Shown in pieces: positions 11,907-35,627 of a stretch of DNA of 64,000 nt; positions within the stretch are counted from its first letter, which is position 1; each line of letters begins with the position of its first letter. The stretch is taken from sequence record MK817115.1, one strand, 5' to 3'. Both the position numbers and the translations under genes were made by a program. Below the pieces are notes generated by a model. That model was not told the DNA's origin, ran no database searches, and saw nothing but the letters and a program-made list of their open reading frames with translations.

Positions 11907-11936
11907 ATTATATCACAAAAAATCGGTGGGTGTCAA
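11907..11936 (-). promoter_or_regulatory. sigma70-type promoter with 5' leader hairpin
   Basis: TTGACA-18-TATAAT, then CCCTTTA...TAAAGGG hairpin. Confidence 0.55.
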
Positions 11937-13240: not shown

Positions 13241-13526
13241 AGATTCTTTTCATTTCTTTCTGGATTAAACATAAGAAATCAAAGTTACAATCGTACTTAT
13301 TATCCCATACTAAACTTTCTTGGAATAACTCATCCTCTTGCATTAGTGTAGTGTCAATTACATCTTCACGGACATAGCTATATACTTCATAGCTCTTGAA
13401 GCCATCTTCTGATAATTCTAATTCATATGCAGCCATATCAAACATATCATCATGGTTTGTCTTCAAAGATATTAAACAAGTAACTAATTTTTTAGTTGTA
13501 TAGTATGTAATACTTAATGTGTTCAT
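13164..13526 (-). CDS. FQxS-family hypothetical protein
   Basis: EDELFQESLV. Confidence 0.85.
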   Translation of the reverse strand: MNTLSITYYTTKKLVTCLISLKTNHDDMFDMAAYELELSEDGFKSYEVYSYVREDVIDTTLMQEDELFQESLVWDNKYDCNFDFLCLIQKEMKRIFDNYPIKRFSTAPEQYKRIIFTYED

Positions 13527-13531
13527 TTGTT

Positions 13532-14685: not shown

Positions 14686-14866
14686 AACGGATATCCTTCT
14701 TCAACGAATTAATATATTCCAAAATAACTTGTTCCTGATATTGGGTTCCCAAGTACATCAGTACTTTCAACTCTTTGAATTCAGTACTATATGAGTCTGT
14801 TTGCATCATTCTAGTAGAATATATATTGAATAGTTTAGCAATATCATCTTGGTCTATTATTTTCAT
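14675..14866 (-). CDS. LGTxxQE-family small protein
   Basis: YLGTQYQEQ. Confidence 0.85.
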   Translation of the reverse strand: MKIIDQDDIAKLFNIYSTRMMQTDSYSTEFKELKVLMYLGTQYQEQVILEYINSLKKDIRYVR

Positions 14867-15062
14867 TAACCCTCTTCTGTATTAGTTCCTGTAAGTGCTG
14901 AATATAACCCTTCATTGCAACATCCTGTTTGTTAGAGCCAACGAAGAACAAGAGCTTAAAGTCATGGTAATCCATTTTTGGTTTAGTAGTGAACCATATG
15001 TCCCACACTGCACTCACAGTTCTCATGTATTCAATTCGATTAAATGTTTTTGAATACTTCAT
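14844..15062 (-). CDS. LGTxxQE-family small protein (variant)
   Basis: FVGSNKQD. Confidence 0.8.
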   Translation of the reverse strand: MKYSKTFNRIEYMRTVSAVWDIWFTTKPKMDYHDFKLLFFVGSNKQDVAMKGYIQHLQELIQKRVNENNRPR

Positions 15063-15576
15063 CGATGTTCATTGCCAATAAGTTAATATACAAATTACTG
15101 TTAAATGCTATCTGCAATTCCATATAGAACTGAATGATTGCATAGTCAGGGTCAGTACACGATAGTTGAAAACACTGTTCGTCGAATGCATTGTAATTGT
15201 ACTTAGGGATGTGAATTTCACGCTTCAAATCAGGTTGCCCCCACTTCATCGCGTACACACCAATGTTATTGTTCTTTTTCCTTTTCTTAAATGTTAATTG
15301 TTGAATATTTCCTGCGTTATCCAGGAAAATAGAATTATTCGACACAGGTGCACCAATAGAAAACAATGATGTATCAATTACGTGTTTCTCACGTACATCA
15401 CACTTCTGAAATGCACCTGTACCCTGTAATACACGATGAAAATTGTACTTCTCATTAACAACAGTACTAGGATCAATTAAACCAGTACTGCATTTTTTGA
15501 GTACTGGTACGATGATACGAATCTTTTTTGATAAATCTTGTAATGCATCAAAGTCATTGATGTTAACTTTCATCAC
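15040..15576 (-). CDS. FQxS-family hypothetical protein
   Basis: DEQCFQLSCT. Confidence 0.85.
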   Translation of the reverse strand: MMKVNINDFDALQDLSKKIRIIVPVLKKCSTGLIDPSTVVNEKYNFHRVLQGTGAFQKCDVREKHVIDTSLFSIGAPVSNNSIFLDNAGNIQQLTFKKRKKNNNIGVYAMKWGQPDLKREIHIPKYNYNAFDEQCFQLSCTDPDYAIIQFYMELQIAFNSNLYINLLAMNIDEVFKNI

Positions 15577-16022
15577 TCAAATGTGGCCTCTTCAGTAGTA
15601 ACAAAATTGATTAGTGTATCCAGTTCAGCAGTGTCAAGATAAAATACATCCAGTACTGATTTCTGATATATTACACTGAATGTGCATAGATTGTCAAGCG
15701 TTCCTTGTTCATAAACAGTACTACCCTGGAAGTACCCTTCTTCAGTACTCAGGGATAAAATGTCTGAAATTTTAAAAGATTCTTCAGTCGCATGTCTTTC
15801 TATATTAACTAAATGTCCGTTTCGGTTCAATGAAATATAATCGTATGCTAACTCAATTAGACTATAATTATCCGCATTAGTGTCAAATAAAGCGACAATT
15901 TTTCGTCTCAATCTCTCATCGTGATCATGGTTTTCATCAGCTAAGTATTCAGGATTTTCTTTGAAGAACTTAACAACTTTTAGAATATCATTTGCTTTCT
16001 TGATTGCACTTTCGTAACTCAT
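15573..16022 (-). CDS. FQxS-family hypothetical protein
   Basis: EEGYFQGSTV. Confidence 0.85.
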   Translation of the reverse strand: MSYESAIKKANDILKVVKFFKENPEYLADENHDHDERLRRKIVALFDTNADNYSLIELAYDYISLNRNGHLVNIERHATEESFKISDILSLSTEEGYFQGSTVYEQGTLDNLCTFSVIYQKSVLDVFYLDTAELDTLINFVTTEEATFE

Positions 16023-16327
16023 AATAATTCAACCACTCCATCTCTAAAGTACATATAACTACCACCATTGGATACTGTGAATTCTATTGTCCCCAATAAT
16101 ATATTATATTTTTTTATTTCACATGTAGTACTTGTAGTGTAAGGCTCACCATCTCCTAAGTACATTGACATATGACATAGAACTTTTCTACCAGCATATT
16201 TCTCTTCAAACGATTGTTCAAAACTATGCATAATTTGATTTAAAGCTGAAATGTAATTAATAAAGTCAGGTATTTCTGTCAATGAATTATAAACCGTACA
16301 AAGTGAATCAAATTCATTTTTAGTCAT
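16019..16327 (-). CDS. hypothetical protein
   Basis: 102 aa, stop/start-coupled to neighbours. Confidence 0.75.
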   Translation of the reverse strand: MTKNEFDSLCTVYNSLTEIPDFINYISALNQIMHSFEQSFEEKYAGRKVLCHMSMYLGDGEPYTTSTTCEIKKYNILLGTIEFTVSNGGSYMYFRDGVVELL

Positions 16328-16641
16328 TATATTTCTATCTCAATGTAATCCTGTGTGATTAAGTAATCCCAATGATACTTCACCTGCTTTTGTAATTCAA
16401 TTAACGTAAAGAAGTTGATCGATTTATCCCATACGAGCGATTCCTGGAAAATAAATGATTCATGTTCATCGTAATAATCACACTCTAAAAAATCAGGTAT
16501 ATATTCACTATCGTGAATGTATTCAACAAACGAACTAGCTTGGCATTTCTTTACTACTAGTAATAATGAATTATCATGATCAAACAGATACAATAAACTA
16601 ATTTCACCAGGGACGTACTGAACACTGAATAAGTTTTTCAT
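16327..16641 (-). CDS. FQxS-family hypothetical protein
   Basis: ESFIFQESLV. Confidence 0.85.
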   Translation of the reverse strand: MKNLFSVQYVPGEISLLYLFDHDNSLLLVVKKCQASSFVEYIHDSEYIPDFLECDYYDEHESFIFQESLVWDKSINFFTLIELQKQVKYHWDYLITQDYIEIEI

Positions 16642-17090
16642 TCTATACCTTCTGGATCTTTACGAAGTTCTTCGAAATCCAAATAAAATCGAGGACAGTT
16701 AACACTCTTTAAATACCACATAATAACTAATGCTTCAAGTACTTCATCATCGTAAACAGTACTGTTTTGGAAGTAATACTCTTCACTATCCCACGGACCA
16801 TCCAGTACTTCATAATTCAAAATTAATGGTTTTTTGCGATTAATAAAACGAATGCTACCATTTTCAACATAACTAATAAATTCTGCATCTCTATTGTATT
16901 CAGAAAACGATATAGGACTATTGGAATTCAACCCAAGAATAACCCTTACACCAACGGAGTTATTATACATTTCATCTTTGTAGTAGTTGCCGTTCTCGGC
17001 TTTGTACACTTCTTTGAACTTTCCTGCCTTTATATCGTCAAAGTATCCATGTAGTTCTTTTGCTTTTTCAAGAGCACTTTGTAATGACAT
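16638..17090 (-). CDS. FQxS-family protein, GPWDSEEYYFQ subfamily
   Basis: MSLQSALEKAK...GPWDSEEYYFQNSTV. Confidence 0.9.
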   Translation of the reverse strand: MSLQSALEKAKELHGYFDDIKAGKFKEVYKAENGNYYKDEMYNNSVGVRVILGLNSNSPISFSEYNRDAEFISYVENGSIRFINRKKPLILNYEVLDGPWDSEEYYFQNSTVYDDEVLEALVIMWYLKSVNCPRFYLDFEELRKDPEGIE

Positions 17091-17556
17091 TACCTTCTCC
17101 TACAGTATTCTCTACATATTCATAATCAAAATAGAAACTACTGGAGTCAATACTTTTGAAATACCACATAATCACAATAACATCCAGTTCTTCTTCATTG
17201 TACAACGTACTATTCTGGAAGTAATACTCTTCACTATCCCACGGACCTTCTAGTACTGAATAAGGAATGATAGTGTCATCAGCATCACTATCTGTGTTGT
17301 AGATGGTAATATCTTCATTACGGCAATAACTAATGTACTGATTGTACATATGATATTCACAGTTATCACTGTCACCAGTATCAGTGTGCAGTACTAATGT
17401 TTCTGCACATATCTCGGACTCGTCATAATCGTCACGGTCTTTTACAAAAAATTCAGTATCAGATGTTTTATATACACCTGGAACTGAACCTTCTTGTACC
17501 ATAATCATATACTCATGAATCTTCTTTGCTTCTTTCAATGCACTTTGTAACGACAT
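17068..17556 (-). CDS. FQxS-family protein, GPWDSEEYYFQ subfamily
   Basis: MSLQSALKEAK...GPWDSEEYYFQNSTL. Confidence 0.9.
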   Translation of the reverse strand: MSLQSALKEAKKIHEYMIMVQEGSVPGVYKTSDTEFFVKDRDDYDESEICAETLVLHTDTGDSDNCEYHMYNQYISYCRNEDITIYNTDSDADDTIIPYSVLEGPWDSEEYYFQNSTLYNEEELDVIVIMWYFKSIDSSSFYFDYEYVENTVGEGNVITKCS

Positions 17557-17999
17557 TACAAATCCCCTGAACTTAAATATTCACATGCTCCCCAGTCAAG
17601 AAAGAATGGTTCAAAATTCAATTCCTTAAAGTACCACAACACAACCAAGGAATCAAGCATTTCTTGGTTAAAAATGAAACTCTGTTGGAAGTAATACTCT
17701 TCAGTACCCCACGGGCCATCAAGTACCCCGAAGTCAACAGGTGCATTTGATGTGTCAAACGTAATCTTAGTACCTGGAATATATACAAAAAAACTAGTAT
17801 ATTGACTACATGAAGAGTACTGTATAGTATTGTCTTTATCCTGTCCCATAAGTAAAATATCATCAGAGTATGTCTTTATACCTGATAGATAATACTCATC
17901 ACCAAATGCACTTACTTTATCACCATAGAACCCACTTTTTATGTTATCGTGGAAGTGATGTATTCTGTGTGCTAGTTCAAGTGCACTTGCTAAACTCAT
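17556..17999 (-). CDS. FQxS-family protein, GPWDSEEYYFQ subfamily
   Basis: GPWGTEEYYFQQSFI. Confidence 0.9.
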   Translation of the reverse strand: MSLASALELAHRIHHFHDNIKSGFYGDKVSAFGDEYYLSGIKTYSDDILLMGQDKDNTIQYSSCSQYTSFFVYIPGTKITFDTSNAPVDFGVLDGPWGTEEYYFQQSFIFNQEMLDSLVVLWYFKELNFEPFFLDWGACEYLSSGDL

Positions 18000-18466
18000 A
18001 TATCCTCTTTAATAACTCGTAGTAGATCCAAGTCCAAATAGAAGCTAGGACAATCTGTATTATTAAAGTACCACAGAATGACAAGCTTGTCAAGTACATC
18101 TTCCTCGTAGATAGTATTCTGCTGGAAGTAGTACTCTTCACTTCCCCAGTCATTATCCAGTACTGAATACGGAAGATGTTTCTCTGCTGCACCAGATATA
18201 ATGTCAGAATCTTGTATTAAAATATCAGCATCACGACAGAAGTACATGTAATTATCTTCCAAATTAACATCACACCCATTGAGTGTTGTTTCAGAAGAAT
18301 CTAAGTTTTCTTCATACATGTGAATGTACTCACTACTGTCATCGTATCTCATTCGACAATAAGATTTACCTTCCTTGAATAGATATCCATTGAGACAATT
18401 TGCTACAATTTCTTTGCTGCATAAATCAATTAACTTCGCAATCTCTAATGCTCTTTCTAAACTCAT
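17996..18466 (-). CDS. FQxS-family protein, GPWDSEEYYFQ subfamily
   Basis: NDWGSEEYYFQQNTI. Confidence 0.9.
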   Translation of the reverse strand: MSLERALEIAKLIDLCSKEIVANCLNGYLFKEGKSYCRMRYDDSSEYIHMYEENLDSSETTLNGCDVNLEDNYMYFCRDADILIQDSDIISGAAEKHLPYSVLDNDWGSEEYYFQQNTIYEEDVLDKLVILWYFNNTDCPSFYLDLDLLRVIKEDI

Positions 18467-18467
18467 T

Positions 18468-18959
18468 TTAACCCCTGTTAATACCGTTATCTACAGTTTT
18501 CTTTACGTATTTGTAATCGAAATAGAAGTTCCCAGAACCAATACTTTTAAAGTACCACATAATTATAATAACATCAAGTACTTCATTATCGTATACAGTA
18601 CTTTGTTGGAAGTAATACTCTTCACTATCCCACGGACCTTCCAGTACTTCACTCGGAATTATAATGTCATCGGAATCGCTATCAGTACTGTAGATGGTAT
18701 CTGTATCATTAATATAGACCATGTACTCATTATGCATATTAATGAAGCATTCATAATCATTAGGGTCGGTATCCAGTACACACGTTTCTGTATCCAGTAC
18801 GCACGTTTCTGTATCTGAGCAGTCATTATAAAGGAGGTTATCCGGTACATAATATTGAGTACTTGTGTCTTTGAAAACACCGTAAACTGAACCTTCTTTT
18901 GCCATATTCATGTACTCATGAATCTTCTTTGCTTTTTCCAATGAACTCTGTAATGTCAT
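18468..18959 (-). CDS. FQxS-family protein, GPWDSEEYYFQ subfamily
   Basis: GPWDSEEYYFQQSTV; internal 21-nt tandem duplication at 18769-18811. Confidence 0.9.
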   Translation of the reverse strand: MTLQSSLEKAKKIHEYMNMAKEGSVYGVFKDTSTQYYVPDNLLYNDCSDTETCVLDTETCVLDTDPNDYECFINMHNEYMVYINDTDTIYSTDSDSDDIIIPSEVLEGPWDSEEYYFQQSTVYDNEVLDVIIIMWYFKSIGSGNFYFDYKYVKKTVDNGINRG

Positions 18960-18968
18960 TTTATAATC

Positions 18969-19328
18969 TCATATATTGAAATAATAATTATTCGTTCTTG
19001 ATGGGGATGGATTAAATACGTTTTCTTTTTCAAATCTCTTCATTTCATTTTGCAAAGAAACCATTTCTTCAAATGTACAGGAGTACTTATTCTTATCAAA
19101 CACTAATGCAGCCTGAAATAGTTCACCATCGTCCAGTACTGTATAATCTATAAGACTCTCAGATTCATAGTCATAGTCGTCATGTGATACATGAATAAAT
19201 TTAAAACAAGAATCTTTGTAATGCATATATAAACTCAACTCATGTTCCGAGTCGCCCTTAATAAGATTACAGCACAAGTCCCATCCTTTAGGTAACTTAT
19301 AATAGTACATAGAATAATCATATGTCAT
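18969..19328 (-). CDS. FQxS-family hypothetical protein
   Basis: DGELFQAALVFDK. Confidence 0.85.
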   Translation of the reverse strand: MTYDYSMYYYKLPKGWDLCCNLIKGDSEHELSLYMHYKDSCFKFIHVSHDDYDYESESLIDYTVLDDGELFQAALVFDKNKYSCTFEEMVSLQNEMKRFEKENVFNPSPSRTNNYYFNI

Positions 19329-19681
19329 TCTTGAATTCCTAAATTGAATTTGTATTCTTGATTAATACTTGCATTGGGTTTATGCAAAGCAGCATACTCT
19401 TTCATTTCATTTTGTATTGCAATAACTTCTTCAAATGTACACAAGTACTTCTTATCAAATACTAATGATTCTTGGAATAGTTCTGCGGTATCCATTAATG
19501 TATAGTCCGGCATATCTTGGTGTGGATACTGTAATGAACTGTAATCAATGAATGTAAATTTACCCTGAGTGTAATGAATATACTCATTTGCACTGTGCAT
19601 TAAATCACCTTTGTTTAAATTACAAAAGTACTGATAACTGTGCTTGAAAGTATGTACTGATATTAAAAAATCAAATTCCAT
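19325..19681 (-). CDS. FQxS-family hypothetical protein
   Basis: TAELFQESLVFDK. Confidence 0.85.
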   Translation of the reverse strand: MEFDFLISVHTFKHSYQYFCNLNKGDLMHSANEYIHYTQGKFTFIDYSSLQYPHQDMPDYTLMDTAELFQESLVFDKKYLCTFEEVIAIQNEMKEYAALHKPNASINQEYKFNLGIQE

Positions 19682-20052
19682 CAGTACTCAACCTCTACAT
19701 AAATAGATTCAGGAAACTTAGTCATATAATCTTCTGGATAGTTCTGCATTACTTTGATCATTTCTGCCTGTGTAGCACGGACGTATTCAATTGGTGCTCC
19801 TGGTAAATTCCAGACAGTACTTTCCTGAAAGAATTCCTCTTCTGACAGTACTGTCAGATTTACAAAATCATTACGGTAATTTTTTGAATCATCATATGTG
19901 AAGATTTTAAAAGACCCATTTTCATATAGTACAAGAACAAAATGGGAGAATTTTTGTAATGCACCACCAAGGCTTTCCACGACCGCATGATTCAGTGTAC
20001 AGATGACCTCTTTTTTCCTCATACCGAATTGAATTCTAATTTCTTTTTTCAT
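19681..20052 (-). CDS. FQxS-family hypothetical protein
   Basis: EEEFFQESTV. Confidence 0.85.
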   Translation of the reverse strand: MKKEIRIQFGMRKKEVICTLNHAVVESLGGALQKFSHFVLVLYENGSFKIFTYDDSKNYRNDFVNLTVLSEEEFFQESTVWNLPGAPIEYVRATQAEMIKVMQNYPEDYMTKFPESIYVEVEY

Positions 20053-20210
20053 AAAATCTCCTTCAGATTAGTACTGAATTTGTACAGAATATTAGAACTG
20101 TATACAGCCTCTGTATCTGTATCCATAATCAAATCACCTTTGTTTAAATTACAAAAGTACTGATAACTGTGCTTAAAAGAATGTACTGATATTAAAAAAT
20201 CAAATTCCAT
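20049..20210 (-). pseudogene. truncated duplicate (53 aa) of the 5' end of 19325..19681
   Basis: 20131-20212 matches 19602-19683 with 2 mismatches; MEFDFLISVHSFKHSYQYFCNLNKGDL, then unrelated tail. Confidence 0.7.
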
Positions 20211-20587
20211 CACTCTTCCCCTAGATTGAAATGATTACAAAAATCATCTTCACCAGTACTGCACCAGATATCTATACATTCCCTGTGAATACATTTAATT
20301 CTACGCTGTAATTCAATCATCTCTTCTAATGTACAGATGTACTTCTTATCAAATACTAATGCCGCCTGAAACAGTGCAGCATCATCAAGTACTGTATAGT
20401 CCAACATCTCGGTTGCTTTACCCCTAAACCCAGTACTAAAATCCATCAAATAAAAGTCAGCATTCCAGTACTTTAAAATCTTGTCCCTAGCGTAGTTTAA
20501 ATCACCCTTGTATAAGTTAGAGTGCGTAACTAACTCACCAGTGTACATCCATGTCCTTGCACAAAATTCATTATATTTTATTTCCAT
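20210..20587 (-). CDS. FQxS-family hypothetical protein
   Basis: DAALFQAALVFDK; start trimmed to MEIKYN. Confidence 0.85.
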   Translation of the reverse strand: MEIKYNEFCARTWMYTGELVTHSNLYKGDLNYARDKILKYWNADFYLMDFSTGFRGKATEMLDYTVLDDAALFQAALVFDKKYICTLEEMIELQRRIKCIHRECIDIWCSTGEDDFCNHFNLGEE

Positions 20588-20783
20588 CTTAATCTCTACT
20601 ATAATTAATAAGGTAAACTCCAATATAAGGAGCACGTTGCGGGGGCGGGGTATTTTTTGTTTCAGGAAACATGAACTGTACTCTGAAAAACACAATATAA
20701 AACTTTATATTAAACATATACCTTAGCATGTTTTTCAGCGGAAATTTTTTTGACCCCCTGCGGCCTGTCAAAACGAAACGTCT

Positions 20784-21008
20784 CTATTTATTCAGCCTAG
20801 AAACCTTGATTTCTTCAATCCTTTTCATTGCACAAAGCCTTCGACTCGTCCTCTCGTATATATTCAATACTCGCTGTAATGCATTATCTGTATTATCTGC
20901 AACTGCAATCTGAACCAAATATGTATCCTTCAAAATAGAATCCATCATGAATTCAAAACCTTTCACACTAAAGCAATATGCCACTTCCGGCTCTTCAAAC
21001 GTAATCAT
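20784..21008 (-). CDS. hypothetical protein
   Basis: 74 aa chained ORF. Confidence 0.7.
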   Translation of the reverse strand: MITFEEPEVAYCFSVKGFEFMMDSILKDTYLVQIAVADNTDNALQRVLNIYERTSRRLCAMKRIEEIKVSRLNK

Positions 21009-21198
21009 AATTCCAATCCCCTATTCCCTCTAACCTTCTAAGATATCTTGCGTAAATTATTTCGAAATATCTGTGCAACGAAATTACGGATTGCTCATAA
21101 TCATCATTCCTGTACATTGTGCATGTCAGAAAATCATTTAACCCAAAATCTAAACTGCACTTGAACTTCTCCTTAGCAACATCTCTAAAATTATTCAT
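20995..21198 (-). CDS. hypothetical protein
   Basis: 67 aa, GAGG RBS. Confidence 0.7.
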   Translation of the reverse strand: MNNFRDVAKEKFKCSLDFGLNDFLTCTMYRNDDYEQSVISLHRYFEIIYARYLRRLEGIGDWNYDYV

Positions 21199-21358
21199 AA
21201 TATGTCCTCTGTACAGCGTAGGTGTACTGTGAACTCAGCACCACTAATAGGTAATCTATATTGTAAGCACGATTTCCTCGTTGACTAGCACGGCTGGAAT
21301 AAAGAATATTATCCACATATGTATTGAACTGATCTTCAAATAACTCTTTCATCAGCAT
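21191..21358 (-). CDS. hypothetical protein (55 aa, below cutoff)
   Basis: Hand-translated MLMKELFEDQFNTY...; fills the gap exactly. Confidence 0.5.
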   Translation of the reverse strand: MLMKELFEDQFNTYVDNILYSSRASQRGNRAYNIDYLLVVLSSQYTYAVQRTYYE

Positions 21359-21380
21359 TATACCATCACATAATCATACA

Positions 21381-21932
21381 TCATACATTAACAACTTTAT
21401 CGATGTAATCTTCTAACATATCAATATATCTGGTATTGGTTCTAACTAAAAGGTATGCAAATCCAGAGAACTCCTGTGTATAATGCTTTACAGCGTACAT
21501 ACAACGAAGCTTATCATTGTCATACATTGTACTGTACTGAAACAAACTCTCGTCTGATAGCTCTAATAACGCTTGGGCTTCACTTCTCGTGAACTTCATA
21601 GGGTCATGTACTGCATCACAAAAACAAACCTGTGTCTCGCTATTGAAACCCTGTGATAGATATATACCTTCACACTCTGAACGCACCGATACTGCATTAT
21701 AACTATGTGTTGCCCCCATCATATCTGAACTCAAAACTAAAATCAACCCATTTTTATTTTTAATCAACAAATCTGACTTAAGGGATTTGATCTCCGTATG
21801 GGAAATATCACCAAATCTTCCTGGGACTTCAAACTTATCAACGTTGTATACAATCTTTTGTACTTGCTCTTTTAAACGCTTAATTGCACTTCTGTCTTTT
21901 TCTAATGTATCTAATAAACTCATTGAACTCAT
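21381..21932 (-). CDS. FQxS-family hypothetical protein
   Basis: DESLFQYSTM; start trimmed to MSSMS (AAGGA RBS). Confidence 0.85.
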   Translation of the reverse strand: MSSMSLLDTLEKDRSAIKRLKEQVQKIVYNVDKFEVPGRFGDISHTEIKSLKSDLLIKNKNGLILVLSSDMMGATHSYNAVSVRSECEGIYLSQGFNSETQVCFCDAVHDPMKFTRSEAQALLELSDESLFQYSTMYDNDKLRCMYAVKHYTQEFSGFAYLLVRTNTRYIDMLEDYIDKVVNV

Positions 21933-29098: not shown

Positions 29099-29408
29099 TA
29101 GGCTCCTGTTTAGATTCTTTCATTAGTACTATCATCTTATGTACTAATGGCATAGGAAACTCTAAATCCCATACTAATGATTCCTGAAAGTATTCCTCTG
29201 GTGATAAAGTACTTAAATCTTTAATATCAACGTGCTTGTATATTTTATTTTCGTAATTAACAAATGATATATATAAATCACTAACATAAGAATCATAGGT
29301 AATTGTGAATGGTTTACCCTTGTAATCCATTACATCTCTACATAGACTACTTTTGATATATGTATGTTCAAATGATTTATATACCTTGAGTTGTATATTA
29401 GTTTTCAT
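29064..29408 (-). CDS. FQxS-family hypothetical protein
   Basis: PEEYFQESLV. Confidence 0.85.
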   Translation of the reverse strand: MKTNIQLKVYKSFEHTYIKSSLCRDVMDYKGKPFTITYDSYVSDLYISFVNYENKIYKHVDIKDLSTLSPEEYFQESLVWDLEFPMPLVHKMIVLMKESKQEPNGDYEEHIVEY

Positions 29409-29658
29409 ATTTCTCTTTATTAGCTTGTTTGGTTTTATAGTGAATTAAATCTATTAATGTAATCAAGTACAACGTCAAATAGTACTCTTGTTGATCTGTA
29501 CCTAATGATACAAAGAACTTGTGCTCATAGATTAAAACCTGTTTCTCTTCAAATGGACATTTAATCCTCTGTATAGGCTTAAGTAAATGATAGTACTTAT
29601 TAAATCTATGATACATTTCTAGTTCTGTCAGTACTTTCATATTAAACACATACTCCAT
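29398..29658 (-). CDS. LGTxxQE-family small protein
   Basis: SLGTDQQE. Confidence 0.85.
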   Translation of the reverse strand: MEYVFNMKVLTELEMYHRFNKYYHLLKPIQRIKCPFEEKQVLIYEHKFFVSLGTDQQEYYLTLYLITLIDLIHYKTKQANKEKYEN

Positions 29659-29863
29659 TAGCAGTAGCAGTACTTAAAGCACTCAAATACCTCTGTACGG
29701 CTTGCTCTTGATGATCTGTACCTAAAAGTATATACACCCATAATTCATTGTAGTGTACATCTTCTGTATAAGGGTTGTTGTAACTTTTTGATAATATAGC
29801 ATCAAATTCAGATGCATAATCCCTTGTGAACTTAAACATATCTTGTTGTGTTATGATTCTCAT
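29642..29863 (-). CDS. LGTxxQE-family small protein
   Basis: LLGTDHQE. Confidence 0.85.
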   Translation of the reverse strand: MRIITQQDMFKFTRDYASEFDAILSKSYNNPYTEDVHYNELWVYILLGTDHQEQAVQRYLSALSTATANGVCV

Positions 29864-30075
29864 AACTTTTCCTGTATAAGCTTCTTAAGTATTTCTATGT
29901 GTGAATTAACAGTTCTTTCTTGATGCTGTGTTCCTAAGAGTGTCAGTACTATCATCTCTGAACGCAAAAGATTTTTTTCAAGTTCACTTATATCAGTTCT
30001 TGAATCAAGTGCCATATATTTGTGATTATTCTTCCTGAATAGTGCCAAGTACTCTTGATTTGATATTTCCTTCAT
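29860..30075 (-). CDS. LGTxxQE-family small protein
   Basis: LLGTQHQE. Confidence 0.85.
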   Translation of the reverse strand: MKEISNQEYLALFRKNNHKYMALDSRTDISELEKNLLRSEMIVLTLLGTQHQERTVNSHIEILKKLIQEKL

Positions 30076-30302
30076 AGTTTATTCCTGATGCCATTTAAAA
30101 GTGCTCTAATATGCTCATTGACAAATCGCTCTTGGGAATCTGTTCCTAGAGTGAGTAGCAATCTTAAATCTGAACTTTTGATGTGATATTCTAAATCATT
30201 CTTTGATTCTTGCATCAGTTTCTTAAAGGATGAGAAGTTTGCAGCCATTAGTTCAATGTATTCTGCTGTTCCTAGGGGTTTGTGTGTGTGCTGTCTGTGC
30301 AT
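30072..30302 (-). CDS. LGTxxQE-family small protein
   Basis: TLGTDSQE. Confidence 0.85.
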   Translation of the reverse strand: MHRQHTHKPLGTAEYIELMAANFSSFKKLMQESKNDLEYHIKSSDLRLLLTLGTDSQERFVNEHIRALLNGIRNKL

Positions 30303-30514
30303 TTTAATTGTATTACCCTTTTGAGTGTATTAATGTAATTATACACATTGGCTTCTTGATAGTTTGTTCCTAGAGTAGCTTGAACGTAGATTTCATTTAA
30401 CTTAATAATTTTATCAGAATCTGGAAGTTTTGATGTGTTAATGGCAAATAACTTCGAAAACAGTCCATTTATGATTGTTAGGTATTCTACTTCGGTAATG
30501 ATTCGCATTTGCAT
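30272..30514 (-). CDS. LGTxxQE-family small protein
   Basis: TLGTNYQE. Confidence 0.85.
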   Translation of the reverse strand: MQMRIITEVEYLTIINGLFSKLFAINTSKLPDSDKIIKLNEIYVQATLGTNYQEANVYNYINTLKRVIQLKCTDSTHTNP

Positions 30515-30726
30515 TGGATAAACCTTTTTAGTTCATTGATGTAATCATTAATATTGCATTCTTGATAGTTAGTCCCTAGTGTAGCTTGAACATAGATTTC
30601 ACTTACTAGAATACTTATTTCATCATCTGGTAATTTCATGCTTTTTGTTATAAACAGCTTTAGAATTAAACTACTTAATAGTTGGTTGTATTCTGTGGGT
30701 GAAATGATTTTCATTTGCATTTGCAT
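30487..30726 (-). CDS. LGTxxQE-family small protein
   Basis: TLGTNYQE. Confidence 0.85.
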   Translation of the reverse strand: MQMQMKIISPTEYNQLLSSLILKLFITKSMKLPDDEISILVSEIYVQATLGTNYQECNINDYINELKRFIQCKCESLPK

Positions 30727-30932
30727 TTTCTCAGTACTGATTCTTTAAGTTCATTAATGTAGCACTCTACATATTCTTCTTGTAGGTTTGTTCCGATATG
30801 TAACAGTACTCTTAAATCTGCTCTCAGTACTTCTTTATCATCTTCATCTATATCAGACAGTGTTATGTTTAAGAATTTACTTGAACTCTCTATAAGTAAT
30901 ATTACTGAATCACCTTTGCTTAAAATTTTCAT
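30711..30932 (-). CDS. LGTxxQE-family small protein
   Basis: HIGTNLQE. Confidence 0.85.
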   Translation of the reverse strand: MKILSKGDSVILLIESSSKFLNITLSDIDEDDKEVLRADLRVLLHIGTNLQEEYVECYINELKESVLRKCKCK

Positions 30933-31140
30933 AATCTCTTTTTGCTTTCCTCGCCAAAAGGTACATATACGATTCTTCGTATTGTGCTTGGTAGTTTGTG
31001 TTTAAGAGTCGAAACAACTTCTGTTCTGCTAGAACGAGTTGCTTATCTTCATAACAACGATAGCGTATCAACTTTTTGTATTCGATGTTGATTACATCCA
31101 TTACTATAAGCCCATGTTCATCATCTGTCAAGTGTTTCAT
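30910..31140 (-). CDS. LGTxxQE-family small protein
   Basis: LLNTNYQA. Confidence 0.85.
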   Translation of the reverse strand: MKHLTDDEHGLIVMDVINIEYKKLIRYRCYEDKQLVLAEQKLFRLLNTNYQAQYEESYMYLLARKAKRDYENFKQR

Positions 31141-31379
31141 GCATTTTTTCTTTTTCTTATATGTTTAGTTAAAAGGTATATTAGTTTTCTATTGTATTCT
31201 TCCTGATAGTTTGTTCCTAATAGTGCAAGAAGTTTTGCTTCAACTAAAGCTAATTGACGTTCTTCAAATGTGTGTTCCAGTATGTACTTGGGGTTTGATT
31301 TTTTAGCGTAAGCACTATTAGTCTTCATTACAATCTTATGATATTCATTAGCAGTTAGGATTTTTAAATACTTGATCAT
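31137..31379 (-). CDS. LGTxxQE-family small protein
   Basis: LLGTNYQE. Confidence 0.85.
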   Translation of the reverse strand: MIKYLKILTANEYHKIVMKTNSAYAKKSNPKYILEHTFEERQLALVEAKLLALLGTNYQEEYNRKLIYLLTKHIRKRKNA

Positions 31380-31599
31380 GTATCTTTTCCTTTATAGAGA
31401 ATTTAAGATATCGAAGCATACTTTCAATGTAATACTCTTGTCTGTCAGTGCCAAGAAAGTACATGAGTTGAATGTATAAAACTTCTGCACTCCTTTCCGC
31501 TGGAGACTTGTTTGTGTCGTTTGGAAGTTGATTTGTATGTTTTCTTGATTTAATTAGTCGTTCTTTTAACTCATCGTCTGTTAAGTATTTCATTTGCAT
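31348..31599 (-). CDS. LGTxxQE-family small protein
   Basis: FLGTDRQE. Confidence 0.85.
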   Translation of the reverse strand: MQMKYLTDDELKERLIKSRKHTNQLPNDTNKSPAERSAEVLYIQLMYFLGTDRQEYYIESMLRYLKFSIKEKIHDQVFKNPNC

Positions 31600-31825
31600 T
31601 TACTTTTTCCTTAATAGTGATTTTAAGATATCTAATCATACGTGCAACATATTCCTCTTGTCTATCAGTTCCCAGAAGATATGGTAGTGATTGGAATAAT
31701 ACTTCTGCACTCCTTTCTGCTGGGGTTTGGTTTAGGTCAATTGGACGTTTATTGGTATATCTCTTGGCACGAACTAATCTCTCGACGTATTCATTATAGG
31801 TTAAGTATATCATTTCATTTTGCAT
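31571..31825 (-). CDS. LGTxxQE-family small protein
   Basis: LLGTDRQE. Confidence 0.85.
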   Translation of the reverse strand: MQNEMIYLTYNEYVERLVRAKRYTNKRPIDLNQTPAERSAEVLFQSLPYLLGTDRQEEYVARMIRYLKITIKEKVNANEILNRR

Positions 31826-32045
31826 TTACTTTTTCCTTAATACTCATTATAAGATGTTCAATCATATTTTGAACCATAAATTCTTGTTTATCAGTTCCAA
31901 GAACGTATGGTAGCTTCTGAAACAATACATTTGCAGATACTTCAGATATTGATTGATTTGGACCGAACTTAAGAGTAATGTTTTTGGTTTTTAACATCTT
32001 CTCTTGAAATTCTTCATTCGTTAAGTATATCATTTCATTTTGCAT
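31815..32045 (-). CDS. LGTxxQE-family small protein
   Basis: VLGTDKQE. Confidence 0.85.
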   Translation of the reverse strand: MQNEMIYLTNEEFQEKMLKTKNITLKFGPNQSISEVSANVLFQKLPYVLGTDKQEFMVQNMIEHLIMSIKEKVNAK

Positions 32046-32261
32046 TTACATTCTCTCATATATATTTTGGGTTAAAAGGTCAATCCAGATTTCCACATAT
32101 CGTTGTTGGTGTTGCGTCCCTAACAGTACACCCAACTTAGCTTCACACTCTAATAACAATCTGGTTTTGTATGGTAGACTTTGGAATCCTATAGTAGCAT
32201 CTAATTTGGTAATTGCATAGTTGATTCGGATGAATCTTTCTTGCAATGTGATGTTGATCAT
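32046..32261 (-). CDS. LGTxxQE-family small protein
   Basis: LLGTQHQQ. Confidence 0.85.
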   Translation of the reverse strand: MINITLQERFIRINYAITKLDATIGFQSLPYKTRLLLECEAKLGVLLGTQHQQRYVEIWIDLLTQNIYERM

Positions 32262-32548
32262 TTCTTAGTACACCTCAGTGGTTGGGTCATTTGATGAAAG
32301 TACAGCTTACCTCTGATTTCCAGTAGCAACTCCGCGATTAAGCGATTTACTTCTGTATCTTGATAGTTTGTTCCTAAGAATACACCCATCTTTAACTCAC
32401 GCATCATAATCATTTTCTTACTGTGTTGAATTTCTGGGTTGTGATAGATTGTATTACGTTTGTGCGTAATTTTTGTCATACGCTCGGTATATTCATCTTT
32501 ACTTAAATTGATCATTTGCATGTTCATCAACCTCACATTTATTTTCAA
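32258..32548 (-). CDS. LGTxxQE-family small protein
   Basis: FLGTNYQD. Confidence 0.85.
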   Translation of the reverse strand: MKINVRLMNMQMINLSKDEYTERMTKITHKRNTIYHNPEIQHSKKMIMMRELKMGVFLGTNYQDTEVNRLIAELLLEIRGKLYFHQMTQPLRCTKK

Positions 32549-32550
32549 TA

Positions 32551-32817
32551 CTATTCTTTAGTTTGTAGATATAGTTTTCTTCCAATATATCTCTTAAGTG
32601 CGATTATGTATTCATCTACATAATACTCCTGATAGTTTGTTCCTATGAATGCACCCACCTTTAACTCAAGTTTCATAATCATCTTATTTCCGTGTTTAAT
32701 GACTTCTCCGTGATGGATTTCATTAAGTCCAGGTGCAATTTTTACCAGGCGTTCTTTATATTTTGCTTGAGATAATTTAATCATTTTCATGTTAATTACC
32801 CTTACATTTATTTTCAA
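32551..32817 (-). CDS. LGTxxQE-family small protein
   Basis: FIGTNYQE. Confidence 0.85.
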   Translation of the reverse strand: MKINVRVINMKMIKLSQAKYKERLVKIAPGLNEIHHGEVIKHGNKMIMKLELKVGAFIGTNYQEYYVDEYIIALKRYIGRKLYLQTKE

Positions 32818-33022
32818 TACTATTCATGAGTTCTATAAGATAGTTTTCTACCTTACCTTCCTGATAGTTAGTCCCTAGGAAGTTGCACAACACGGCTTCT
32901 ATGATTTTGATTTTCCTGATATCAGGCTTCAATCTTTTGTTATTGAATATTTGAATCCTTATATCTCTGGATGCATTTAAACGTTTTTGATATTCATGGT
33001 AAGTTAAATTAATCATTTTCAT
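32792..33022 (-). CDS. LGTxxQE-family small protein
   Basis: FLGTNYQE. Confidence 0.85.
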   Translation of the reverse strand: MKMINLTYHEYQKRLNASRDIRIQIFNNKRLKPDIRKIKIIEAVLCNFLGTNYQEGKVENYLIELMNSIENKCKGN

Positions 33023-33237
33023 TTACGTTTAACCTCTCGCTGGAGGGCATCAATTAACATCAGTACAGCATTCTCTTGATAGTTTGTTCCTAAGACTGAA
33101 AGCATCTTTATCTCATTTACTAAAATCAACTTCTTTGAGGGTTCAATAATGTGACTATCATAAACGGCCTTACGTGCTGGATAAGTTTTCGCCAGTATAA
33201 CATAAAATTCGTCTTTACTTAAATTAATCATTTGCAT
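33019..33237 (-). CDS. LGTxxQE-family small protein
   Basis: VLGTNYQE. Confidence 0.85.
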   Translation of the reverse strand: MQMINLSKDEFYVILAKTYPARKAVYDSHIIEPSKKLILVNEIKMLSVLGTNYQENAVLMLIDALQREVKRK

Positions 33238-33446
33238 TTACTTTTAACCTCTTTCTGTAGAGCGTCAATCCATAGATCCACATACATTTGTTGATAGTTT
33301 GTGCCTAAGAGTGCACCTACATAGAGTTCAGTTACTAGTGCGTGCTTAAGGTTAGCTTGGATGCTCTTATCGCTTGATAAGATTTTCCTTCTGCTGGTGC
33401 ATGTTTTCAGGAGTCTGATGTATTCAAAGCCTTGTAAATTTCTCAT
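33228..33446 (-). CDS. LGTxxQE-family small protein
   Basis: LLGTNYQQ. Confidence 0.85.
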   Translation of the reverse strand: MRNLQGFEYIRLLKTCTSRRKILSSDKSIQANLKHALVTELYVGALLGTNYQQMYVDLWIDALQKEVKSKCK

Positions 33447-33658
33447 ATTTTGGATACCACCTTGTTACGTAAGGCACTTAACAATACGTCAGTGTAGATG
33501 TTTTGATAGTTTGTCCCTACGAAAGCACCCAACTTCATTTCAGCTATTATAACACATTTGTCCTCTTGTGCAATAGATTTGTTTAACACAATACTATACA
33601 CTTTTGATTTGATAGTTTGTAACCTCCAATGATACTGAAACTCATTTAGTGTTATCAT
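33443..33658 (-). CDS. LGTxxQE-family small protein
   Basis: FVGTNYQN. Confidence 0.85.
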   Translation of the reverse strand: MITLNEFQYHWRLQTIKSKVYSIVLNKSIAQEDKCVIIAEMKLGAFVGTNYQNIYTDVLLSALRNKVVSKI

Positions 33659-33893
33659 TCTCTCGTCTCCATATCTCGGTTCTAATGTGTTGACATTGTG
33701 CTTCGATGAACATATCTATTGATTTGGCAATTGCTTTTTTATCAGTGCCTGTCATCAGTACAAGCATCTCTGCCTCACTATGAATTAAACGCATGATATC
33801 ATAGGGTAATATTTCAGATACAGTGTCATAGTGTTTCTGTGCCAGTGTCTGTAATAGTTTACAATACATTTTGTGATTTAGTCTGTGTCGCAT
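33642..33893 (-). CDS. LGTxxQE-family small protein (variant)
   Basis: EAEMLVLMTGTDKK. Confidence 0.8.
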   Translation of the reverse strand: MRHRLNHKMYCKLLQTLAQKHYDTVSEILPYDIMRLIHSEAEMLVLMTGTDKKAIAKSIDMFIEAQCQHIRTEIWRRENDNTK

Positions 33894-34150
33894 TGTTTAT
33901 TCCATTCTCTTCTGGCTTGACGGGTTTTATCTGATATTTCGTTTCTCAATGCAGCGATATATCGTAGAGTGAACAGTTCTTGATAGTTAGTCCCTATGAA
34001 TTTATTAAGATATACATCAGCGTTGACGATATCAGCTTCACGGGAATTATAAAGTTTATTGTTCGTGCGGAGGGTGTTTAGAAGAGAGAAGAGGGCAGTC
34101 TGATACTCCACTCCTGATAAAATCTTCATGTTTTGTGAGCAAATAATCAT
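33878..34150 (-). CDS. LGTxxQE-family small protein
   Basis: FIGTNYQE. Confidence 0.85.
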   Translation of the reverse strand: MIICSQNMKILSGVEYQTALFSLLNTLRTNNKLYNSREADIVNADVYLNKFIGTNYQELFTLRYIAALRNEISDKTRQARREWNKQCDTD

Positions 34151-34370
34151 CTAGTTTATCCTGTATAACATTCGTTAATTGTTCGATATATTCTGTGCAA
34201 AACTTATCTTGATATTGAGTCCCCATAAAGTACAGCAACCATAGCTCATTAACTTTAGCTCGCATTTGGTTCCATGTAAGGCTGGGGTCACCGTAGACTA
34301 TCCTTGTGATGGGGGTTAGTTTACGAATTATAGTTTCAAATTCATCATCAGTTAAGTGTTTCATTTGCAT
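34056..34370 (-). CDS. LGTxxQE-family small protein
   Basis: FMGTQYQD. Confidence 0.85.
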   Translation of the reverse strand: MQMKHLTDDEFETIIRKLTPITRIVYGDPSLTWNQMRAKVNELWLLYFMGTQYQDKFCTEYIEQLTNVIQDKLDDYLLTKHEDFIRSGVSDCPLLSSKHPPHEQ

Positions 34371-34579
34371 TTGTCCCTTATTAAATCAGTGAGGGCAACT
34401 ATGTGTGCAACAACATACTCTTCCTGAAAGTTCGTCCCCAGTACAGCCATCATGCGTATATCGGTGGTGTTTATCCTGTGTTCCCTTACACATAAACCTT
34501 CTGTGTGAGGAAGTGTAAAATATTTGTTTATTGCAGCAACGATAATTTTATTCTTCTCGGAGTTACTTAAATGTTTCAT
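34361..34579 (-). CDS. LGTxxQE-family small protein
   Basis: VLGTNFQE. Confidence 0.85.
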   Translation of the reverse strand: MKHLSNSEKNKIIVAAINKYFTLPHTEGLCVREHRINTTDIRMMAVLGTNFQEEYVVAHIVALTDLIRDKCK

Positions 34580-34788
34580 AGTTTACTCCTGATATAATTC
34601 TGAAGTGCAATTAAGTATTCCCCTACATAATACACCTGAAAGTCTGTATCAAGGAATGCACCCATAAGTAAATCTTTTTCTAATACCCTTGATAAGTTAA
34701 GGTCTGCATTTGAAAGGTATATAAGTAAGATTTCACCCTGTGCGGAATTGAAACGTTTCTTATATTCTTCTGGTGTTAAAAAAATCAT
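34576..34788 (-). CDS. LGTxxQE-family small protein
   Basis: FLDTDFQV. Confidence 0.85.
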   Translation of the reverse strand: MIFLTPEEYKKRFNSAQGEILLIYLSNADLNLSRVLEKDLLMGAFLDTDFQVYYVGEYLIALQNYIRSKL

Positions 34789-35000
34789 AATTTGCTCCTG
34801 ATATATTTCTCAAGAGATGACAAATACTTTTCCTCATAATACTTCTGATAGTCTGTTCCTAAGAATGCACCCAATAGTATATCATTTTCCAATACCTCGG
34901 CTAAGTTTAAATCAGAAGTCTCTTCGTATATTATGAGGATTTCAAGTTGTCTGGCAGCGATGCGTTCAGTATATTGATATGAGTTTTCTATAATAATCAT
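34785..35000 (-). CDS. LGTxxQE-family small protein
   Basis: FLGTDYQK. Confidence 0.85.
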   Translation of the reverse strand: MIIIENSYQYTERIAARQLEILIIYEETSDLNLAEVLENDILLGAFLGTDYQKYYEEKYLSSLEKYIRSKL

Positions 35001-35206
35001 AATTTACTCTTTATATCTTGAATTAAAAATCGAATCCATTCTTCAACATAATCTTCCTGATGGTTTGTGTTCAGTACAGCCAACATGCGGATCTCTGCTC
35101 TTGCAACTTCAATTTCAGTTTTAGGAAGGTCTTTGCTGATATCCACCATTAAGTCCATGTATTTCAAGATAAGACCGTATGATTGGGTTCGTGTTATAGT
35201 TTTCAT
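34997..35206 (-). CDS. LGTxxQE-family small protein
   Basis: VLNTNHQE. Confidence 0.85.
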   Translation of the reverse strand: MKTITRTQSYGLILKYMDLMVDISKDLPKTEIEVARAEIRMLAVLNTNHQEDYVEEWIRFLIQDIKSKL

Positions 35207-35403
35207 TGTTTCCTCGTGGACAATATTTTATTTTTCAATGTATCCATATATTGAATCACCCATCTTTCCTGATAGTTAGTTCCCAAAGTAATCAAAAGGT
35301 ATAACTCCATTCGTTCTACGTGTGTGTCTGTATTATAAATCTTTGTGAAGTTTTTACGTAACAGTGATTGATATTCTTCTTTATTTAAAATACGCATTTT
35401 CAT
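35203..35403 (-). CDS. LGTxxQE-family small protein
   Basis: TLGTNYQE. Confidence 0.85.
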   Translation of the reverse strand: MKMRILNKEEYQSLLRKNFTKIYNTDTHVERMELYLLITLGTNYQERWVIQYMDTLKNKILSTRKQ

Positions 35404-35627
35404 AGTTTACTCGTTATATCTTCAATTAAATACCAAATCCAATCGTTGACATACCTTTCCTGAAAGTTAGTTCCAATGAATAGTGCCATAATTAATTCAC
35501 GCTTATAGGCAATACCACGGTCATGGGACTTATACATTATCATAGCCATGTTATTGATAAGTCTTTCGTGGTGCTGTTCTTTAGTTAAAATACGCATAGG
35601 GACTCCCTTAAAATTATTATCGATCAT
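35400..35627 (-). CDS. LGTxxQE-family small protein
   Basis: FIGTNFQE. Confidence 0.85.
   Translation of the reverse strand: MIDNNFKGVPMRILTKEQHHERLINNMAMIMYKSHDRGIAYKRELIMALFIGTNFQERYVNDWIWYLIEDITSKL

Follow-up and report, generated by a model that had tools for sequence, protein, structure and literature searches.

In PA5oct, a phage dependent on host RNA polymerase (RNAP), the genes of the direct terminal repeat (DTR) are early by RNA-seq; transcripts from the terminal repeat of phage K are present at 2 min, and in CBB host-type promoters stand ahead of short open reading frames (ORFs) that are predicted to be early. The SPO1 host-takeover module and the T5 pre-early genes represent further terminal-repeat-associated early takeover sets, and large eukaryotic DNA viruses carry terminal, lineage-specific tandem families whose copy number varies among relatives ('genomic accordions'). 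Bacillus phage G contains a lineage-specific expansion of ~35 zinc-ribbon genes (Iyer et al. 2021, PMC7824862). An array orthologous to the one described here is present in phage 121Q (23 contiguous copies and 2 nearby), and its existence was probably already noted: a 2017 paper explains such arrays by tandem duplication in one sentence, given without coordinates, which could mean the array family or the larger paralog families adjoining it, and leaves fold, position, expression signals and selection aside (PMC5646251).

The window analysed (64,000 nt; MK817115.1) comprises the final 64 kb of the 352.6-kb genome of Escherichia phage vB_EcoM_phAPEC6 (Asteriusvirus), a jumbo phage of E. coli. 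The ORF listing places 28 contiguous minus-strand ORFs of 66–104 aa, all intact and all members of one family, at 29398–35627 (6 kb; <2% of the genome), as the original prediction had stated, with no other plausible gene among the ORFs of this interval. A profile built from the 28 array members added exactly four extra copies in the window (E 4e-12 to 8e-6), reproducing the predicted total of 32; these form two outlying minus-strand pairs, at 27643–28097 (27643–27909 and 27879–28097; E=1.3e-6 and 1.2e-10) and 14675–15062 (14675–14866 and 14844–15062; E=4.3e-12 and 8.1e-6). The proposal of a single family of tiny paralogs was upheld by PHROG 4148, a phage protein family annotated as function unknown and independent of our profile, which matched 9 of 10 tested members over its whole 74-position model (E 1e-10 to 4e-24); its entry gives no function, structure or genomic context. 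It was the only match, and searches of Pfam, NCBIfam, PADLOC and the PDB returned no named family, in agreement with the first reading of the sequence. The family was confined to Asteriusvirus phages and their uncultured relatives, with 94 clusters among 1.84 billion proteins. It is not a virion protein, because no member appears on the 62-protein virion list of phAPEC6 (PMC7247149).

The genes are numbered in the direction of transcription, all on the minus strand, with E-values from the 28-member profile. As the longest ORF, gene 1 spans 35400–35627 (E=1.6e-21; PHROG 4148 E=1e-19; GenBank gp489c), yet the conserved promoter overlaps this longest form, so that the start is most likely 35597, with GGAG 5 nt upstream; an eight-genome alignment and the gp489c annotation support the same start. 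It is followed by genes 2 (35203–35403; 4.1e-21; gp488c), 3 (34997–35206; 2.8e-23; gp487c), 4 (34785–35000; 1.1e-20; gp486c), 5 (34576–34788; 3.2e-23), which is 51% identical to gene 4 and in which D replaces the usual G50, and 6 (34361–34579; 7.7e-26; PHROG 7e-14). Gene 7 (34056–34370; 9e-28) reaches 104 aa, with its C terminus extended into gene 8 (33878–34150; 8.2e-21), an overlap of 95 nt. The most divergent copy, gene 9 (33642–33893; 1.8e-17), is not reached by the PHROG model; in the 32-sequence alignment its turn contains an insertion and the near-invariant Q is missing. Genes 10 (33443–33658; 9.6e-25), 11 (33228–33446; 7.2e-27), 12 (33019–33237; 1.4e-25; PHROG 3e-21) and 13 (32792–33022; 3e-27; PHROG 4e-24), the last of which was modelled as described below, precede genes 14 (32551–32817; 2.5e-28) and 15 (32258–32548; 2.4e-27), with 49% identity to each other, gene 16 (32046–32261; 3e-22), and genes 17 (31815–32045; 6.4e-22; PHROG 3e-11) and 18 (31571–31825; 2.5e-24), with 55% identity. 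The remainder comprises genes 19 (31348–31599; 1.7e-26), 20 (31137–31379; 2.4e-22; PHROG 9e-11), 21 (30910–31140; 5.5e-20; the usual G50 replaced by N), 22 (30711–30932; 2.1e-23), 23 (30487–30726; 2e-26), 24 (30272–30514; 3e-26; PHROG 1e-18), 25 (30072–30302; 7e-23), 26 (29860–30075; 5.3e-23; PHROG 3e-20), 27 (29642–29863; 4.2e-23) and, as the last of the array, 28 (29398–29658; 4.2e-23; PHROG 5e-22). MK817115.1 has a CDS for 23 of the 28 array genes and omits genes 8, 19, 22, 23 and 25.

Neighbouring genes overlap or abut throughout, as predicted, with 4-nt ATGA overlaps at 13 of the 27 junctions, and a Shine-Dalgarno core is present in 20 of the 28 genes. A sigma-70-type promoter (35628–35655, minus strand; −35, 16-nt spacer, −10; 10/12 consensus positions) lies upstream, and both of its hexamers and the Shine-Dalgarno sequence are kept in 8 genomes, the divergent JNE01 among them. 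The promoter scan found no strict-consensus sigma-70 promoter within the array; a promoter-like site (11/12) occurs inside coding sequence at 31131–31103. The position of the array relative to the DTR was mapped from two related phages, fEgEco12, whose 20,993-bp DTR was determined by PhageTerm and restriction digests (PMC13070987), and vB_Ec-M-J, whose DTR is annotated as 1..21525. Both DTR ends fall at column 166 of one alignment, which sets the inner boundary of the left DTR at the equivalent of 35695/35696; position 1 of fEgEco12 aligns to 55770, and the DTR-equivalent extends from ~35696 to ~55770 of the window. The array lies just outside the repeat, with ~40 nt between the boundary and its promoter. 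On the array strand of 35628–55770 there are 20 strict sigma-70 matches, including the array promoter, against 0.53 expected from shuffles; the DTR block holds 19 consensus promoters, most with a better fit (12/12) than that of the array, which follows directly with its own. Because of the conserved upstream promoter, the lack of a strict internal one and the mostly 4-nt overlaps, the array looks like one early polycistronic operon, the first of the unique DNA beside the left DTR. As this is the first operon after the terminal repeat, its proteins would probably be produced as soon as infection begins.

Directly after the array, with no promoter between, are two minus-strand genes of 114 and 134 aa (28694–29408), which for this reason probably end the operon of the array. 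They belong to an unrelated family, phrog_13866, with no relation to the array family in a profile–profile comparison, and likewise adjoin the array on a metagenomic contig (L004). The first intergenic gap past the array contains a sigma-70-like promoter (28664–28692, minus strand; 11/12, with extended TG), which probably starts the next transcription unit. The neighbourhood of the array also includes DksA-like and kinase genes.

Next, we compared the copies with each other and with their orthologues. Paralogs share 25% identity on average and 55% at most, and the longest DNA repeat covers 226 nt at 74% identity, near-identical DNA being absent; the 'accordion' of the original prediction, in the sense of a recent amplification, is thus not supported. 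Adjacent copies are more alike (32.1% versus 25.3%; exceeded in 0 of 20,000 permutations), which points to a tandem origin. Orthologues are under purifying selection (dN/dS ~0.33; 0.31–0.36 versus six genomes), with values of 0.45 in the columns that vary among paralogs and 0.14 in the turn, the most constrained part; aggregate dN/dS gave no sign of positive selection, though an arms-race family might show it. In the divergent congener JNE01, the array is ~42% identical whereas the adjacent DTR genes are ~94% identical, and the array content is almost completely turned over. On these comparisons, the array is a multigene family that is old and diversified and turns over by birth and death, not a recent amplification.

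In the alignment of the 32 sequences (numbered as the protein of 32792–33022), G50 is kept in 29/32 copies, T51, Q54 and L65 in 31/32 each, I69 in 26/32 and K72 in 23/32; at position 52, 17 copies have N, 9 have D and 4 have Q, and at position 55, 22 have E and 4 have D. The motif had been ascribed to every ORF, and its core GT..Q is indeed found in 27 of 32 copies, but the strictest form in only 15. In the six-frame translation of the window, GT[NDQ].Q[ED] occurs 21 times (20 in the array and 1 in an outlying copy) versus 0.04 expected from composition. AlphaFold2 predicted a compact four-helix fold for the protein of 32792–33022 (monomer; pLDDT 96.5, pTM 0.81), with helices at residues 8–17, 19–26, 33–46 and 54–73. 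The motif was correctly assigned to a helical hairpin, since in the model it lies in the 7-residue turn, with a beta-bridge, between helix 3 and the 20-residue helix 4. The N-terminal helix is variable, as had been noted, but not notably basic (K+R 0.17 versus D+E 0.17). Polar conserved patterns are N/D-x-x-E where helix 4 begins and, at helix 1, T/S-x-x-E, and we infer that the conserved residues give all copies a common scaffold by forming its hydrophobic core, its turn and its helix caps. Copies contain 0–3 Cys, with no conserved Cys or His, and no transmembrane segment was found in the family proteins. Positions 22, 33, 36, 40, 44 and 71 vary among paralogs and are conserved within orthologues; the 'specificity face' that they suggest on helix 3 depends on soft thresholds and only eight genomes.

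The original prediction had suggested binders, such as sponges or inhibitors of host sensors, or combinatorial oligomers. The reading that we tentatively prefer is that an old tandem family has become a diversified panel of early soluble binders against host or defence targets, which fits the early position beside the repeat, the small and soluble fold, the surface positions specific to paralogs but conserved in orthologues, and the fast turnover. Host RNAP would transcribe the array in the first minutes of infection as a single long mRNA, and its cistrons would be translated by coupling. The surface positions that vary among paralogs and are kept in orthologues, clearest on one face of helix 3, would give each copy its own partner, so that the copies jointly may act as a stoichiometric panel that neutralises or redirects host proteins, probably defence or takeover targets, with a repertoire that shifts with changing hosts.

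The strong constraint on the turn (dN/dS 0.14), with G50, T51 and Q54 retained in 29–31 of 32 copies, could alternatively reflect a conserved pole, formed by the N-terminal strand together with the helix 3–4 turn, that docks all paralogs on one partner (a host machine or a phage protein) or on each other as a combinatorial oligomer, while the variable faces recruit differing clients. Co-translation of 28 cistrons would suit such assembly, and phages UB and EC.P1 each have one family domain joined to the front of an unrelated ~190 aa domain, also common to RaK2 and K64-1, which suggests that the family domain can be a module. We consider this unlikely: no partner is needed for the conserved polar residues, because ordinary helix capping and turn formation account for them, the monomer alone is confidently predicted, and the fusion occurs in two genomes only. 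A role as nucleic-acid-binding regulators, acting on phage or host DNA or RNA to tune early transcription or translation, would agree with small helical proteins of median pI 8.6 in an early regulatory neighbourhood, and TetR-type regulators are among the weak top Foldseek matches. However, whole-protein pI ranges from 4.4 to 9.9 with 7 copies below 6, none of the 32 members matched a helix-turn-helix family in Pfam or NCBIfam, the turn and long helix 4 are unlike a helix-turn-helix, and Foldseek found no significant PDB neighbour (E≥3); this role is accordingly rather improbable.

Contiguous arrays comprise 17–30 copies across genomes, a variation that would agree with duplicates fixed to fill a larger capsid while contributing little themselves (the ratchet idea; Hua et al. 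2017). Such filling is very unlikely for a segment of this small size, given that orthologues are collinear across genomes at dS up to 0.35, all copies are intact, dN/dS stays below 1 even at paralog-variable columns, and the promoter and ribosome-binding sites are conserved. That the ORFs are chance products of AT-rich DNA, as the five GenBank omissions might suggest, has a negligible probability and is contradicted by the profile and independent PHROG matches (E down to 1e-28), the motif excess, purifying selection at orthologues and the confident predicted fold.

Compared with proteins of known type, AcrIIC4 and T4 Vs.4 resemble the family in size, helical content and phage-early context, without significant similarity (Foldseek E 6–7). 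DUF1374 of archaeal viruses, which we take to be the AcrID1 anti-CRISPR family, likewise has several paralogs per genome; one of the 32 members matched it, with a score of 15.8 bits against a cut-off of 21. Bacillus phage G is also a jumbo phage in which one tiny domain of unknown role has expanded greatly, but it differs in lineage, host and fold, its zinc ribbons contrasting with four helices devoid of conserved Cys or His. By analogy, the array may be likened to the multigene families of eukaryotic viruses in terminal location, lineage restriction, tandem expansion and variable copy number; because a genomic accordion consists of recent near-identical copies, the likeness is one of form only. 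The PA5oct DTR, phage K terminal-repeat and CBB early genes are similarly small and function-unknown, lie at or beside long repeats behind host-type promoters and are transcribed first where measured. Such takeover sets lie at or next to repeats, the phAPEC6 array just outside its repeat; their genes are for the most part single and unrelated, each behind its own promoter, whereas the array combines 28 copies of one fold under one promoter.

The minus-strand array at 29398-35627 is best read as encoding a set of soluble single-domain binders that have diversified, are made early and are directed against host targets. By megablast it corresponds to positions 317996-324225 of MK817115.1 (100% identity), the 352,598 bp genome of the Asteriusvirus Escherichia phage vB_EcoM_phAPEC6, of which the window is the final 64 kb; the region is present in 35 other records at 84-97% identity (31 Escherichia phages and 4 Salmonella phages, all Asteriusvirus-like). 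All genes under the match are labelled 'hypothetical protein'. The 28 consecutive paralogs and 32 copies of the original prediction were both recovered: the ORF listing gave 28 successive genes on the minus strand encoding 66-104 aa, which form one family by PHROG 4148, and a profile built from these array members revealed four further copies, a pair at 14675-14866 and 14844-15062 and another at 27643-27909 and 27879-28097; the adjoining 50 kb of genome sequence contained none. As evidence for the 28 from which it was built, this profile is circular, and PHROG 4148 serves as the external model for them. MK817115.1 carries no CDS for five of the 28 array genes (30072-30302, 30487-30726, 30711-30932, 31348-31599 and 33878-34150) or for the full-length outlying copy at 27879-28097; all six have annotated orthologues, in slurp01 and G17 among others. 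Chance ORFs were rejected on the basis of the profile matches, purifying selection and motif enrichment.

The PHROG 4148 HMM matched nine of ten tested members (E 1e-10 to 4e-24, model positions 1-72 of 74), and also a fusion protein, P0077, and the protein P0094. Scans of all 32 members against Pfam, NCBIfam and PADLOC yielded no family with hits from two or more members, nor any score at the curated cut-off, in agreement with the earlier impression that no named family could be recognised; PHROG 4148 was the sole match, and a sequence-profile search of the PDB with the family gave a best E of 4.7. In the 32-sequence alignment (numbered by the protein of 32792-33022), the most conserved columns were T51, Q54 and L65 (31 sequences each) and G50 (29), followed by I69 (26), L49 (24), K72 (23), E55 (22, plus four with D) and E42 (22, plus seven with D), while position 52 was N in 17, D in nine and Q in four. 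The pattern GT[NDQ].Q[ED] occurred 21 times in the six-frame translation of the window, 20 of them within the array, with 0.04 expected from composition.

To this family AlphaFold2, supplied with the 32-sequence alignment, assigned a confident four-helix fold (pLDDT 96.5, pTM 0.81; all five models at least 95.8), with helices at 8-17, 19-26, 33-46 and 54-73 and a one-residue beta-bridge from residue 4 to T51. The motif had been described as a helical hairpin, which the model refines: given the modelled helix limits, it covers the seven-residue turn leading from helix 3 into helix 4, together with the initial turn of helix 4 itself. No transmembrane segment was found in the family proteins, and a membrane protein was rejected at a maximum hydropathy window of 1.15. 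Foldseek searches returned nothing with E below 3 in the PDB (best 3.1) and family members only in BFVD. No likeness to a solved anti-defence protein was found, the Foldseek values for AcrIIC4 and Vs.4 being E 6.2 and E 7.0.

The family proteins could alternatively be hub adaptors or oligomers, a reading to be weighed together with the conserved polar residues, most of which are probably structural judging by the DSSP string of the model and known helix-capping rules: T/S7...E10 and N/D52...E55 would serve as caps for helices 1 and 4, respectively, and the turn would be made possible by G50. Nucleic-acid binding is a further alternative, to be set beside isoelectric points that span 4.4-9.9 with a median of 8.6. 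A helix-turn-helix regulator as such was rejected, for there was no HTH Pfam match and the helix 3-4 turn has seven residues with a beta-bridge, as against three to four in HTH proteins; TetR-type Foldseek matches had E of at least 3.3 and probability of at most 0.21. A virion component was likewise rejected, since no family member is listed for phAPEC6 particles; gp45x-gp49x are all missing from that proteome of 62 virion-associated proteins, in which small proteins are easily missed by mass spectrometry.

Identity between paralogs averaged 25% and reached 55% at most, and the longest direct DNA repeat was 226 nt at 74% identity, so that no near-identical DNA is left and recent amplification was rejected on these figures. 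Neighbouring copies were nevertheless more alike than copies in random order (32.1% vs 25.3%, exceeded in 0 of 20000 permutations), which is the trace of old tandem duplication. The number of contiguous copies was 23, 26, 27, 28, 28, 29, 29 and 30 in close Asteriusvirus genomes and about 17 in JNE01, a divergent congener. Hence the original description as an 'accordion' holds for copy number, which varies between close relatives, but not for near-identical tandem copies, which are absent; the label fits only loosely, as copy-number change over long times. Gene order is kept among the close genomes, apart from copies gained, lost or swapped locally. Against phAPEC6, 25 direct terminal repeat (DTR) genes of JNE01 average about 94% protein identity, whereas the best matches of its array members average about 42%, with the step in identity exactly at the repeat boundary.

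Six related genomes each contained orthologues (60% identity or more) of 20-27 array genes out of 28, with a pooled dN/dS of 0.31-0.36 at dS 0.08-0.35. By column class the ratio was 0.20 for paralog-conserved, 0.45 for paralog-variable and 0.14 for turn positions; because dN/dS is low in every class, each copy is constrained in its own right. An improbable alternative, that the array is genome filler, has to contend with this constraint. Residues 22, 33, 36, 40, 44 and 71 differ between paralogs yet keep an identity of 89% or more when orthologues are paired, while exposed helix-4 positions 63 and 70 vary among paralogs and orthologues alike. From this pattern we tentatively propose that one face of helix 3 may serve as the specificity surface.

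The timing of expression was approached through the position of the array and its signals. The DTR of phage fEgEco12 measures 20,993 bp by PhageTerm and restriction digests (PMC13070987), and that of vB_Ec-M-J is annotated as 1..21525; the DTR ends of both fall in one alignment column, equivalent to window 35695/35696, and base 1 of fEgEco12 aligns to window 55770. Since the DTR ends map in this way, about 35696-55770 corresponds to the repeat, and unique DNA begins directly after it with the array, in the same reading direction. A sigma-70-type promoter lies at 35655-35628 on the minus strand, about 40 nt beyond the DTR boundary, and leads to a GGAG that is separated by five bases from the ATG at 35597; the promoter hexamers and the ribosome-binding site are kept in eight genomes, divergent JNE01 included. 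The array thus has both the position and the host-type promoter of an early gene set beside a terminal repeat. On its strand, a strict promoter pattern matched 20 times in 35628-55770 compared with 0.53 in shuffles, and the same pattern gave no match inside the array and only four on the whole plus strand. A looser scan found one 11-of-12 promoter-like site within the array (31131-31103, inside a coding sequence), and the next good minus-strand promoter, at 28692-28664, comes after two unrelated genes following the array. ATGA overlaps occur at 13 of the 27 junctions, and a Shine-Dalgarno core precedes 20 of the 28 genes, an approximate count based on a generic 10-base core. We read these signals as those of one putative early polycistronic operon of about 30 cistrons, probably with translational coupling. 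The array would be expressed early; in the related, host-RNA-polymerase-reliant PA5oct the DTR genes are early, the authors of CBB predict early expression for short ORFs behind RpoD-like promoters, and the terminal-repeat genes of phage K are transcribed at 2 min. Genes annotated as spackle, DksA-like, GNAT and Ser/Thr kinase are among those in the fEgEco12 repeat.

The surrounding DNA has features of its own. The DTR-equivalent (about 35696-55770) has a GC content of 36-41% vs 32-36% in the array, and holds small genes spaced 80-100 nt apart. Its sigma-70 promoters number 19, all near-perfect, and a recurring GC-rich hairpin in the leader follows many of them; its intergenic DNA is repeated and appears as spurious plus-strand 'ORF families'. 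Within it, 39459-40100 (minus strand) encodes 213 aa with a weak protein-kinase match (E 0.003, under the cut-off), and the fEgEco12 orthologue is annotated Ser/Thr kinase. The interval 54700-56034, about 1.3 kb without an ORF of at least 60 aa, holds the equivalent of the left physical end (about 55770), and the GC skew changes sign there. Next to it, a second, unrelated array at 56034-60256 (minus strand; at least 16 tiny ORFs of 60-87 aa, phrog_11711) has its own sigma-70-like promoter at 60310-60282 and occupies the opposite end of the unique sequence; as it adjoins the physical terminus, the terminal repeat has an array of tiny paralogs on each flank. Three paralogs in tandem (380-402 aa) with RCC1-like repeats (60341-63937, plus strand) are the only sizeable plus-strand genes of the window. 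The roughly 29 kb at 217-29408 (minus strand) consist almost entirely of paralog families without assigned function, including phrog_13866 (110-160 aa, 10-11 copies), phrog_9317 (147-167 aa, eight copies) and many proteins of 180-200 aa, for example phrog_35776. The phrog_13866 family, directly 3' of the array, was modelled with moderate confidence as beta-rich (AlphaFold2, pLDDT 71.7; no PDB neighbour better than E 0.07), and profile-profile comparison of the PHROG 4148 family with it and with the 56-60 kb array found no relation. An Rfam scan of the whole window returned no match, and neither did a tRNA scan.

Among 1.84 billion representative proteins, a profile search found 94 clusters, all of 52-122 aa except one of 269 aa; those traced belong to Asteriusvirus genomes, to contigs close to 350 kb in length, or to uncultured relatives represented by metagenome contigs. 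By tblastn the family was found in 36 phage records, every one an Escherichia or Salmonella Asteriusvirus-like phage, and these same records hold the nearest known relatives (about 37% identity) of arrays on metagenome contigs, one of which (9 kb) has 13 copies in a row and another (40.8 kb) 13 that are scattered. No family match came from plasmids or from complete E. coli genomes, and IMG/VR gave no relative when queried with a single family protein. The family is a lineage-specific expansion, with many paralogs in one lineage and none found outside. In phages UB (L013, 3001-3810) and EC.P1, one family domain stands N-terminal to an unrelated domain of about 190 aa, forming the 269-aa fusion protein P0077; this C-terminal domain is common to Klebsiella phages RaK2 and K64-1, being 40% identical to a hypothetical protein of theirs, and it gives no functional clue because it had no Pfam match and a word-based search found only P0077 itself.

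Paralog arrays were mentioned previously by Hua et al. 2017 (PMC5646251), echoed in one sentence by the phAPEC6 paper. The family is already known as PHROG 4148, and we found no published work that analyses its fold, position, signals or selection, or what it does.

Orphans make up most of the gene content of jumbo phages, which also carry large paralog expansions. The array described here is an unusually clean case, combining one confident fold that has no structural neighbour, 28 intact copies in what we read as one operon, defined early signals, an exact position at the terminal-repeat boundary and constraint on all copies; its repertoire also turns over fast among phages that infect different strains of E. 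coli and Salmonella. For the proposed binders we infer early timing, a scaffold-plus-surface logic, host targets and an anti-defence role. If the copies are target-specific, they would supply dozens of natural probes for components of host takeover or defence, and would help to account for the success of these broad-host-range phages on diverse hosts; should the copies not be binders, the array remains useful as a well-bounded model of phage genome growth by duplication. A more far-reaching and rather improbable version of the binder reading would join these elements: the 28 co-transcribed paralogs would form a recognition repertoire on one four-helix scaffold, whose conserved pole plugs into a common host or phage hub while each paralog-specific face captures a different host defence or housekeeping protein, and which related phages re-stock by the birth and death of copies. 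Were this repertoire real, it would constitute a combinatorial adaptor system, distinct in having no described counterpart among phages.
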